Below, piece after piece: positions 1 to 27,063 of a stretch of 64,000 nucleotides of DNA. Source of the stretch: Eutreptiella sp. 'Long Island Sound 2002'. Lineage: Eukaryota; Protista; Euglenida. The DNA lies in contig OZ038378.1 of assembly GCA_964036045.1 (NCBI GenBank), forward strand, positions 193,316,001 to 193,380,000. Reading direction: 5' to 3'. A model generated the notes under the pieces. That model did not search any database. It was given only the letters and a program-made list of their open reading frames with translations, and was not told the origin of the DNA. Numbering within the stretch: the stretch's first letter is position 1; each line of letters opens with the position of its first letter. The translations under genes and the position numbers were made by a program.

Positions 1-3000
1 AGAAGTCGAACTGCACCGCCAGCCGGACCTGCACGATGGTCCTGGTCGCCACGAGCACCGACATCACGAAGCTCATGCGCATGCGCCTGTCGGACGTGGG
101 GTGGCAGGTGTACACGCAGGACATGTTCGACACGTGCGGGAGTGACGCGAGGTCTGCACTGCTCCCGCAAGGGGGCGCACCCGGGGGCCAGGGTGGTCTT
201 CGAGGCTTCAACCCAATGATGGCCCTGAAGCAGCGCCCGAGCCACAGGGCAACCTGAAAATTGCTCTGCGGGGGGGGGGGGGGGGATGGACGCCCGCTGA
301 AGGAGGGGGGGGTTGGAGAAATGGGGTTCCGTATCGGGCCCTTTGTTTTGTGTAAGAACGGATGTTGGCGCCAAAGGCACAGGAACACAAAATTTGGCCC
401 GAAAAAGTTTTTTCCACCAATAATTCCCCTCCCCCCCCCACATTTGAGTAGTCAAAATGATCAGCGCGACGTGGGTATCATTTTGAGCCATAGATGTTGG
501 GTTGCCCCCCCCCCCCCCCCGGCACGGCAGGTAGGGCAGCCCCCGCCCTGAACCCCCCCCTCCCGTCACGGCGGCCAAGGAGGGAGGGGGGGGGTTGGGA
601 AAATGGGCTTCCGTGCCCCCCCCCCCCCGCAGAGCAATTTTCTTCCCGCCCAGGGTGCAGGCACGCGGGGGGTGACCCCTCGGGTCTGCCCCCCCAAAAC
701 AAACTGTTGGCCGGTAGCCCCCTTGGGGGGGTTTGACACGAGGCCATGATTTTGGTTTGTTTGCCTTTGGCGGCGCCTATTGGCCTCTCGCCAAGGAGGG
801 GGGGGGGGATCCGGAGGAGCGGGTAGGGGCGGGTCAAACTTTTTGGGTTGTTCTCCTTTCGGTGGCATGTGTCACGTCCCCATTTCCTTTTCCATCTCCA
901 TTCCGTTCCTTTCGACAGCACACGAGTGCGGGGGAACAAACGGTTGACCACTCACCACGAGAAGAAACAAAAAAAACCTGGAAACTCTCGCGCACGCATT
1001 CAGTGCGCCTTGCGCAGCACCCGATGGGCCGTCATGCGGTTGTCGGCCCCAGGGCGTCGGCGACCCAAGCGCCGCTCCCCATGGGCGTGGATTTAGGGGC
1101 CTGAAGGCAACAGCCCGTCTCTCGGACACGGTGCTGTTCACGCGGTTTGCTTCCGCCATCAGCCCAGAAGTAGCTCGTTGATGCATGAGGCCGAGGCCGA
1201 GCGCGGCAGCTCTGCTGGCGGAGGGCTCAGGGAACGGGGGGCGTTTCAGTGTAGTTCTGGACTCGAGCACCCGCGGTGTGCTGGATGGCCAGGGGACGAC
1301 CCTTGACACAGGCCTGGGCCCACTTCTTTGGCCCACGAATGCAAACTCAGCAAGTGCAAACGCCAACAAGGGGCCCGCCTGGTTCCAGACGGCCAGACGC
1401 GCCAGAAGACGCCAAGCGGTCCCCCTGAACCCCCCCCAAAGTTTCAAGCGAGGTCCGACATGTGGACAGTTGAACCACATTTGCTCCCAGTGTTGTGATG
1501 GAATGGGAAATCACCTCGAAGAGAGGTTGTTAGATCAAGCGCAGGCGCGGGCGTCATATACCCCCCTTTTTTGGGGTCATTCGCGTAGCATACCCCAAGG
1601 CATGATATTGGATGACCAACCCCTTGTAAAATCATTATTTTGCCCAATAAGAGCATCCCCCAATGGATTTTTTGATTTTGAGGCCTCTACCCCCTAAAAC
1701 TGGATATCACTTTTTTGAGGGGGGGGTGGGTGGGGGTGGGTGGGGGGGGGTGGGGGGGGGGGTCAAAAGTTTTTGCTTAATAGGCTACCAGCAGTGGGGA
1801 CGCACGGTGCTGATAGCACGGCCAGCGGTCCAATGGTAACGCAGCCGATACCAGATGTGCGGGCGTCGGTTCGAATCCTGATCCACTGACTTTTAGCGCC
1901 GCCGGCGGCGGCGGCGCCAAAGTGGGCAGATTGGGCTTCGAACCGCCAACCACGGGGATGCCGGTCAGCTGCATTACCATTCGGCCACTACTTGCATTGC
2001 GGCGAAGGGCCTCCCTGCTGCTTTGGGCCGCATCTGCCACTGACAAAAAACCCAAACTGTGTGTATCTGTCTGACTGCCTGCTTGCTGGCTCAGGGACTG
2101 ATTGGATGACTGTCAACCTCTCTTCGAGGTGCACTGCCGAAGGCAATAGAATTTAGAAGGCGGAGGGCCAGCCTGCCCCCTGCCCAGGGACTCACTTCAA
2201 AGAGCCCCCCCGCCCCCCCACCTTCAGCACCCTGTCTGCCCTGCCCCTACCCCCGCCCCGGGGCCATGGCCCCGGCGGTGGCTGCCTTGTGGTGGTCGCC
2301 TTTGCGGCTGACGACGCATGTTTTCTGTGGCGCGCACTGCAGCAGCGCCTTCCACCTGTGTGGCTGCTGACCCCGGCCCTAGCGCCAGCCCTGCGTGCGC
2401 AGTGGCCAGCGGATCTATATGTCCACCAGTTAAGCCCGGATGCAGTGTTGCTCTGGGAACCAGGCACCCAGCTGGAGTACTGGAGGCTAGGCACCCAGCT
2501 GGAGTACTGGAGGCTGTAAAGACTCACCTGAACAGAGGGGCAGAGGTTCTTGCAGCGTGTGCTGTCACACCGCCCTTCCAGCCTGATGCCGGCCCTGCGT
2601 GCGCAGGGCCCTGTGACTCACTACTCGACACGGCCCGAAAATGCCCGGATACAGCGCAGTGCATGTCGTGCTTGCAGCTCAGCGACCCATGCCCGCCAGC
2701 GTTCCAGCACTGTGCAGTGCATGGGCAGGCGGTAGACAGCAAACTCCCCCCCTCCGGCCCGCGCCGTGTGGCGCCCGGCGGAAGGCGGCGGGGACCCGAG
2801 GGACGGGGGGGGGGGGACCGAGGGGGAGACGAGAGCGACGCGATGGACGCTTCGCCCGCCGCGGTGTGGCGACGTCCAGCCCAGCCTGGCCGGGGCAGCC
2901 GTATCCGGTGCGTCTGGTGGAATCGGTTCCAGGCACTCAGACACCAGACACCAGACACCCCCCACCTTCAGGGTGCCGGTCATTCCCTTTCCACTTACGC

Positions 3001-27063: not shown

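Follow-up and report, generated by a model that had tools for sequence, protein, structure and literature searches.

The window (the whole 64,000-nucleotide stretch that was analysed) carries on its + strand, between 14318 and 27063, nine exons of a kinase gene, separated by eight introns with gt donors and cag acceptors throughout, and these exons join in phase except for a frame break at 14499. The first of them (14318-14649), whose own acceptor is not AG, starts with YIRLCGCIPK…WHFLVG and runs on into a disordered stem. The second half of the stem lies in the next exon (15916-16134), which contains the family motif 'FQSSxHF' and aligns with residues 21-56 of P0003, a transcript protein of Euglena longa. 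The kinase N-terminal segment (…CDP…C…PMSSTLNFARTIKFK) is encoded at 17191-17367 (tblastn E 3e-19 to P0003), followed at 17743-17832 by an exon for AVLK, with the beta3 Lys, and LEPYSE, with its two Glu. Splice sites and alignment with P0003 define the remaining five exons. These encode LLGFYVDRILKINRVPPTAW… (19007-19138), which is matched to FAM20A as 'AFHLDRILDFRRVPPT'; AFVVSFEQ…SIQLWMYGLHSLE (20009-20122); the catalytic loop FDYILCNTDRGVKKNNY (21303-21469); a conserved Cys pair and the metal-binding HIDQGSSFYK (24927-25136); and the C-terminal helices (…AAQDRLDLLAQH…) up to the TGA stop codon at 27061-27063 (26892-27063). All eight exons from 15916 onwards have cag acceptors, have gt donors wherever an intron follows, join in phase, and are collinear with residues 21-398 of P0003 (tblastn E 3e-7 to 9e-23).

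An earlier reading, made from the window sequence alone, had described fifteen exons spliced in phase into one protein. Nine of these are firm and three more, upstream of 14318, are supported by coding statistics, but a fourth upstream exon (8920-9189) is doubtful. The in-phase splicing holds for the eight exons from 15916 to the stop codon, but the exon at 14318 is frame-shifted as assembled and is open only with an extra G after 14499. The four catalytic motifs are found where that reading had seen them (AVLK at 17782, PYSE at 17821, NTDR at 21429 and HIDQG at 24988). Its Cys-rich module corresponds to a Cys-bearing stretch formed by 9596-9727 and the start of the 14318 exon, and its low-complexity linker of ~170 aa to a stretch of about 150 residues, which we infer to be the disordered stem of the family.

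Splicing is shown by RNA at four exons. In two estuary metatranscriptomes (depth 2-6, not a culture), RNA contigs match 14318-14486, 15914-16135, 17191-17369 and 17741-17832 at 99-100% identity, with unlike letters past each edge. One contig of 229 nt lies on 15914-16135 with 0 mismatches, two cover 17191-17330 and 17215-17369, and the contig on 17741-17832 has an additional 54 letters upstream. Because the contig edges coincide with exon edges, the acceptor after 14649 is 15916, and not the alternative 15894 that had been considered beside it; the junction itself is absent from the RNA contigs. Two contigs begin exactly at 14318, past which they carry 8 and 41 letters that do not match the window, and the RNA thus shows that the 14318 exon is internal. 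Addition of a spliced leader at this position was considered and rejected, since 41 unlike letters exceed a leader of roughly 26 nt and since there is no AG at the site. Among the RNA contigs examined, no read joins any upstream sequence to 14318, and the junction 9727 to 14318 was not observed. When protein fragments derived from transcripts were sought across the linker exon, the window's own ORF was the only match, and an exact DNA pattern from the 14318 exon had 0 matches in JGI metagenome contigs.

One G is missing from the window after 14499, where the frame of 14318-14649 breaks, and this could mean that the present copy is a frame-shifted pseudogene. However, a contig from a DNA run with the same organism label has the additional G, which restores the reading frame. 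Over 800 bases, three 1-bp indels are all that separates this contig from the window, a pattern typical of assembly errors. The other exons of the gene are all intact, and they are spliced. We therefore regard a pseudogene as very improbable.

The kinase is of FAM20 type, as the sequence-only reading had proposed, and three lines of evidence agree on this. First, a profile of the relatives (A3), with whose first sequence the window exons are collinear, was compared with the sequences of solved structures in the PDB and matched FAM20B (E 1.4e-12), FAM20C (1.2e-10), FAM20A (3e-9) and C. elegans Fam20 (8e-7). Second, an AF2 model of the ortholog P0003, which is not the window's own protein (pLDDT 77.9, pTM 0.79), was searched with Foldseek, and FAM20C, FAM20A, FAM20B and ceFam20 chains took ranks 1-27 (E 2e-8 to 9e-7, TM 0.41-0.52). 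Third, PF06702 (Fam20C) is the only Pfam family that recurs among the relatives. A point against is that its curated cut-off of 26.8 bits is exceeded by P0004 alone (28.5 bits); the other relatives score 13.8-25.3 bits. In an exon-level search, single window exons had no match to Pfam Fam20C. The window kinase contains AVLK, LEPYSE, NTDR and HIDQG, and the residues K132, E141, E145, D272 and D306 are invariant in the family. In the family profile, the alphaC Glu and both Asp align with those of FAM20B. The sequence-only reading had thus assigned the four catalytic residues (Lys of beta3, Glu of alphaC, catalytic and metal-binding Asp) correctly. Taken together, the window gene, which has many exons and is transcribed, probably encodes a kinase that is, judging by its residues, catalytically intact, and that belongs to a FAM20-superfamily clade found across Euglenozoa.

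Within the superfamily, the best profile match is FAM20B, the glycosaminoglycan xylosylkinase (Hydra Fam20, 5xom/5xoo), with an alignment that extends from alphaC to the C-terminus. The alignment pairs the alphaC motifs (AEIAAFHLDRLLG with sE…DRLLG), the catalytic loops (FDFLIGNADR with FDYILCNTDR), the metal-binding Asp and the C-terminal helices, at about 15-17% identity and with the N-lobe outside the profile alignment. In the Foldseek comparison the fold matches too. The His that directly follows the catalytic Asp-Arg in DRH is absent from the euglenozoan proteins: the window has DRG, and the relatives have DRG, DRW, DRS, DRR or DRT. In FAM20B this residue, His301, binds xylose (PMC5865150). 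The euglenozoan clade has Gly or Trp at this position, and the sugar-pocket residues cannot be mapped. Because the xylose-binding His is a Gly in the window kinase, a FAM20B-type substrate cannot be deduced. FAM20C, the Golgi casein kinase, and FAM20A follow in the profile comparison (E 1e-10 and 3e-9) and are the top Foldseek matches (E 2e-8). The scores of the clade are mostly below the Pfam cut-off, and the clade differs from FAM20C and FAM20A in having its own pattern of conserved Cys and a DRG/W..(K/H)N loop.

The window's catalytic loop, DRG..KNNY, is closer in wording to type II PI 4-kinases than to the DRHHYE of FAM20. The exon of the catalytic loop, taken alone, has its best match in PI4K2A/B (DYIIRNTDRGNDNW; E 0.015), and among the Foldseek matches type II PI 4-kinases form the second group (E 1e-5). 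However, the family profile matches these kinases (PF00454) with an E of about 0.7, versus 1e-12 for FAM20B, and the Pfam family PI3_PI4_kinase scores below its own cut-off and below Fam20C. In public databases the relatives are named 'hypothetical', 'transmembrane protein' or 'PI 4-kinase', the last being the UniRef name of a Eutreptiella fragment. The name 'PI 4-kinase' is probably a mislabel.

We found about 25 relatives, in euglenids, diplonemids and kinetoplastids. They include the 'transmembrane protein, putative' of Bodo saltans, KAJ9448926.1 of Diplonema papillatum, and transcript proteins of Entosiphon, Ploeotia, Eutreptiella and Euglena longa. These proteins are true orthologs or paralogs of the window kinase: they are 30-60% identical to it, contain its QSSxxFxDF motif and retain its invariant residues. 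A search for the family in JGI metagenome contigs gave 3 distant loci, which added nothing on further domains, and a search for contigs that encode the E. longa and Eutreptiella proteins found none on record. Almost all relatives consist of a membrane anchor, a disordered stem and the kinase, in this order, and a hydrophobic N-terminal segment is present in 17 of 20. No additional Pfam domain was found in them. The kinase is predicted to work in the lumen of the secretory pathway, because nearly all full-length relatives have the anchor and stem and because the family retains conserved Cys. This prediction derives from the relatives, since the window itself is without a signal anchor. In contrast to the relatives, in which the anchor directly precedes the stem, neither the window gene nor the E. 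longa entry has an anchor at this place: the stored E. longa ortholog starts 35 residues before its QSS motif, and the reading frame of the window runs on into other exons. Either the window and E. longa proteins differ from the other relatives, or the N-terminus is incomplete in both. No stretch of the window gave a signal anchor, and the gene probably starts before it.

Reviews treat the FAM20 kinases as a family of animals, 'from sponge to mammals' (PMC7948968, PMC5865150), and the literature we searched held no paper linking FAM20 with Euglenozoa. With a catalytically intact, anchored and clearly FAM20-related clade present in euglenids, diplonemids and kinetoplastids, lumenal kinases of FAM20 type would no longer be confined to animals, and the question arises which targets they phosphorylate in protists.

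What precedes the kinase exons was analysed with a codon-position dinucleotide model, which separated the known exons from introns in leave-one-out validation; a composition-based exon finder limited to GT-AG borders was not discriminating and was set aside in favour of this model. Four candidate exons lie upstream on the + strand. The first (23-133; …MVLVATSTDITKLMRMRLSDVGWQVYTQDMFD) has a coding score of +18.4 bits. The maximal segment in its region, 3-150, scores 22.6, with the antisense strand nearly equal at 20.8. The second (7200-7481) has 94 codons (VVYVSPYALV…DVDLLAR…RVVVFRPS…SPDWNPWQ), a cag acceptor and a gt donor, and a score of +27.8 that is positive along its entire length. The third (8920-9189) is the doubtful one: a canonical exon at 8920-9039 is possible and scores -1.7, and the coding signal extends over 8953-9189, with 8979-9189 scoring 15.7. 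The fourth (9596-9727) encodes four Cys (…SCTATCEELNMKCSQSALGFTSLQDCKTLDAVFG), has a cag acceptor and the donor GTATGT at 9727, and scores +8.8. Its frame fits both 14318 (phase 0) and the canonical alternative 14326; left unspliced, it runs to a stop at 9752. Between 150 and 7198 the model found no convincing coding exon. More generally, exon models for this genome are limited by two things illustrated here, assembly errors of a single base and introns of the nonconventional kind.

The first 81 nt of the exon at 14318, which precede any Met, score +15.2, whereas none of 1034 intron windows scores above 12.1. We infer that at least one further exon, upstream of 14318, shares this open reading frame. 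The next exon would most likely be 9596-9727 and, with it, 7200-7481 and 23-133, so that the simple anchor of the relatives would be replaced by a Cys-bearing module and an alpha/beta-looking module. Whether these exons are fused to the kinase is, in our estimation, evenly balanced. The intron that ends at 14317 follows neither GT-AG nor the published signature of nonconventional introns, N3-CDG…CHG-N5-6|R (PMC12501133), and the ends of the putative intron 9728-14317 pair no better than controls. Nonconventional introns make up 72% of introns in E. agilis (PMC12501133).

Instead of one gene there could be two, an upstream gene that ends at the stop at 9752, and a kinase gene that has its own unrecognised 5′ exon or exons, with start codon and anchor, spliced to 14318. 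This arrangement would agree with the anchor-stem-kinase order of all other full-length relatives, and with the stop that the frame of 9596-9727 meets 8 codons past the putative junction. It also gains from the nonconventional border at 14318, given which exon borders are not predictable from GT-AG. However, no coding-like exon with a Met and an anchor was found in 9752-14317, where no segment exceeds 12 bits and where the only Met-plus-hydrophobic candidates, tried as a membrane-anchor first exon at 12410-12600, score -21 and -35. Two separate genes are conceivable, though we consider them rather doubtful.

The sequence-only reading had gone further, to a single protein in which a GT8-fold domain, the Cys-rich module and the linker precede the FAM20-like kinase, and in which the GT fold would recognise the kinase's glycan. 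In favour of this model, there are coding-like exons upstream, on the same strand and joining in frame, and the frame is open upstream of 14318. The order of VLVATS…, VVYVSPYALV..DVDLL and HAPG..RVVVFRPS also recalls, by eye, GT-A/GT8 strands. This likeness to GT8 (glycogenin-like, PF01501) consists of the order of hydrophobic strands in 23-133 and 7200-7481, and no statistical match accompanies it. Exon-level Pfam searches of all upstream pieces, with E up to 10, returned nothing; these blanks are weak evidence, because Pfam on raw stop-free segments and trimmed exons was blank even for true kinase exons. A phmmer search of the upstream pieces against the PDB gave noise only (LacI, SPT6), and an Atlas feature search with 7200-7481 reached up to 0.78, which is chance level. 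For 9596-9727, Atlas gave a lead at 0.80-0.82 to clusters that include some GT18 members; by the tool's own rating this lead is probably wrong, and we discarded it. A single-sequence AF2 model of the 7200-7481 exon has alternating strands and helices, at an unreliable pLDDT of 50.3.

A regular-expression scan of the three + frames of 1-14400 for motifs of GT8 enzymes found no DxD after a hydrophobic strand, and the candidate strand in 7200-7481 reads VVYVSPYALV, with SPY in place of DxD. FNxG, DQxLLN and KPW are absent from the coding-like upstream exons, and the two matches in a scan for C-terminal HxxGxxKPW-type and DQxxLN motifs, at 5496 and 13477, both lie outside them. There is also no candidate exon for the roughly 45 residues that a GT8 fold needs between 23-133 and 7200-7481. 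The GT8 fold thus finds no profile, structure-sequence or motif support in these exon-level tests. For the claimed fusion of GT8 and kinase, the junction into 14318 is unseen in RNA, and the architecture occurs in no relative, among proteins of up to 1093 aa. We consider this model improbable.

In a modified form of it, an ancestral anchor-stem-kinase gene would have gained, in front, a degenerate GT-A-like module without catalytic activity, together with the Cys-rich module, giving a lumenal pseudo-glycosyltransferase joined to a FAM20-like kinase. This too seems unlikely, and the architecture occurs in no relative and in no paper that we found. If it existed, a sugar-binding scaffold would present a glycan or glycoprotein to the kinase. 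More generally, an N-terminal fusion, if true, would be a lineage-specific rebuilding of a FAM20-like enzyme.

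All four kinase motifs named by the sequence-only reading were found on the forward strand: AVLK at 17782, PYSE at 17821, NTDR at 21429 and HIDQG at 24988. GC content in the window is about 0.51-0.72, and chance ORFs are abundant on both strands. In a tblastn comparison of euglenid proteins with the window, eight exons, from 15916-16134 to 26892-27063, were collinear with residues 21-398 of P0003, the orthologous protein of Euglena longa, with E-values per exon from 3e-7 to 9e-23. Each has a cag acceptor, and a gt donor wherever an intron comes next. Their phases agree, two split codons (CG/G and AC/G) included, and a TGA stop at 27061-27063 closes the kinase reading frame.

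RNA contigs came from two estuary metatranscriptomes, not from a culture of the organism; these contain 5-7% of the words of 13000-19000. Contigs placed on 13150-19149 are 99-100% identical to the window over exon-sized pieces, and their letters past the piece edges are unlike the window. The pieces, all on the forward strand, are 14318-14464/14486, 15914-16135 (a 229-nt contig with 0 mismatches), 17191-17330 and 17215-17369, and 17741-17832 (with 54 more letters upstream). Given the letters common to exon ends, their edges coincide exactly with the predicted borders 15916, 16134, 17191, 17367, 17743 and 17832, and thus the kinase gene is transcribed and spliced. The contig edge supports 15916, so that an alternative acceptor suggested at 15894 was wrong. 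Since the RNA contigs leave 14487-14649 bare, the junction from 14649 to 15916 is unseen. The contig across 15916 has just two letters past the shared AG, a thin hint that is compatible with a preceding exon that closes on AG, the ending found at 14649; just as thinly, these letters do not fit a spliced leader, which we take to end in CG.

Pfam searches with single exons gave no match even for genuine kinase exons, so that such exon-level searching is blind. Natural relatives match Pfam Fam20C weakly (14-28.5 bits; cut-off 26.8), and PI3_PI4_kinase scores below Fam20C in them. A profile of nine relatives, searched against PDB sequences, retrieved the FAM20B xylosylkinase (E 1.4e-12), FAM20C (1.2e-10), FAM20A (3e-9) and C. 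elegans Fam20 (8e-7), with Type II PI4K at about 0.7. In a Foldseek search with the AlphaFold model of P0003 (pLDDT 77.9, pTM 0.79), ranks 1-27 are all FAM20 chains (E 2e-8 to 9e-7), followed by PI4KII-alpha (1e-5). In the alignment with FAM20B, PYSE supplies the alphaC Glu, NTDR the catalytic Asp (Asp299 of FAM20B) and IDQG the metal-binding Asp, as had been assigned from the sequence; among the aligned relatives, neither the AVLK Lys nor either Glu of LEPYSE varies. The position after Asp-Arg, a xylose-binding His in FAM20B (PMC5865150), is occupied by Gly in the window kinase and by Gly, Trp, Ser, Arg or Thr among relatives. Alignment, profile and fold evidence together bear out a predicted FAM20-type fold and catalytic machinery, while the substrate cannot be deduced. 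The public name '1-phosphatidylinositol 4-kinase' of a Eutreptiella gymnastica fragment (P0007, UniRef100_A0A7S1IBH9) is probably wrong: with the family profile, E-values for FAM20 are lower than those for PI4K by eleven to twelve orders of magnitude. Automatic labels are FAM20C (KEGG) on one relative and PI 4-kinase on another.

The gene had been read as a fusion of this kinase to a GT8-like fold, through a linker of about 170 residues. With the catalytic-loop exon as query, a search of 1.8 billion representative proteins matched proteins of Euglena longa, Ploeotia, Entosiphon and Eutreptiella. Together with further searches, about 25 relatives were recovered, whose sources also include Diplonema papillatum, Namystynia, Apiculatamorpha and Bodo saltans; the remainder are metagenome-derived. 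Of those reaching the N-terminus, 17 of 20 start with a strongly hydrophobic segment, and the order is then a low-complexity stem of 60-450 residues, a QSSxxFxD motif and the kinase. The presumed linker is therefore the family stem and does not join two fused domains. P0003 is an exception without an anchor; its header gives a length of 448 and 405 residues are stored, and we suspect that trimming removed the start codon, leaving an incomplete N-terminus. An intronless metagenome homolog of 513 aa (P0005, L001:10001-11542; ENA assembly, contig of 2.46 Mb) provides a complete anchor-stem-kinase reference. The longest relatives (797, 823 and 1029 aa) have longer stems only, and none of the relatives has an extra Pfam domain. 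Because proteins as long as 1093 aa were admitted in the last search, any fusion as large as predicted would have come up had the collection contained one; none of the approximately 25 relatives has that architecture. Reviews describe FAM20 as an animal family, and no paper in the library searched links it to Euglena or Euglenozoa. A new, divergent kinase of the FAM20 kind is well supported, and the fusion is a hypothesis.

Coding signal ahead of exon 14318-14649 was evaluated using a codon-position dinucleotide model, trained on ten known exon pieces against introns of the kinase gene. For left-out exons, scores per 100 nt were +6 to +15 bits when read in the correct frame and -10 to -33 when read in the wrong ones; 95% of 120-nt intron windows fell below -0.9. 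In exon 14318, the initial 81 nt, which come before its first Met, scored +15.2, against a maximum of 12.1 in 1034 intron windows. Since RNA contigs also indicate that this exon is internal, the ORF extends upstream. Coding-like segments on the forward strand are 3-150 (22.6 bits), 7198-7533 (32.1), 8979-9189 (15.7, with doubtful borders near 8920-9189) and 9582-9705 (16.2), with no convincing segment on that strand in 150-7198 or 9752-14317. Exon 7200-7481 has canonical borders and a positive score over its full length. Exon 9596-9727 is in frame with the next exon at 9727/14318, or canonically at 9726/14326, the latter being excluded because the RNA contigs start at 14318. The supported border reads tttttgc/TAC, lacking AG, with a usable CAG 8 nt downstream that also keeps the frame. 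This border resembles that of a nonconventional intron, yet the published signature CHG-N5-6/R (PMC12501133) is absent there, and pairing of the intron ends is no better than in controls. On this coding and border evidence, the chances are evenly balanced that the upstream exons encode the N-terminus of the kinase protein. A separate upstream gene, with the kinase gene having its own unrecognised first exon, is less likely; the sole candidates for a Met-plus-hydrophobic first exon in 9752-14317 are clearly non-coding by the model.

As to what these upstream exons would encode, the GT8 likeness is a resemblance by eye only. Pfam (E up to 10), PDB and Atlas feature searches with the upstream pieces, all exon-level and too insensitive to dismiss the fold, were blank for GT8, as were scans for DxD, FNxG, DQxxLN and KPW. 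The strand that is the candidate for carrying DxD reads VVYVSPYALV; the AlphaFold model, made from one exon, is unreliable (pLDDT 50); and the fold needs about 45 residues between the first two upstream exons, where there is no exon candidate.

A DNA-run contig with the same organism label spans 14407-15207 and differs from the window, over about 800 bases, solely by three 1-bp indels: an added G after 14499, a lost base at 14823 and an added G after 15121. With the G after 14499, exon 14318-14649 keeps one frame throughout (…KAVKPAKDAAPAVMEAQ…); without it, the frame shifts. We take its absence as a homopolymer error in the assembly. One of the three indels breaks an exon frame; false frameshifts from single-base assembly errors may occur elsewhere in the genome.

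Several intron stretches (13150-13349, 15550-15949, 16750-17149 and 18750-18949) reach a summed DNA-run contig depth of up to about 355,000 and also occur in metatranscriptomes at lower identity, and are therefore high-copy repeats that are transcribed somewhere. Within a 3.5-kb intron, at 22300-22940, a unit of about 230 nt occurs three times in tandem (peptide repeat …KYWHFASTTCRQCLQLAGR… in the ORF list). From ORF translations, intron microsatellites are a CA/TG dinucleotide run (11980-12130), a long trinucleotide run translating as poly-Ile/poly-Asn (16240-16310) and a purine-rich run translating as RERERE (17470-17560). Finally, 5823-6209 and 10430-10706 on the forward strand have similar Ser/Asp-rich peptide ends (…SDTVSVDDEALSDNLSD… and …SSDAIESEVNYSPDDE) and may be copies of one intron element.
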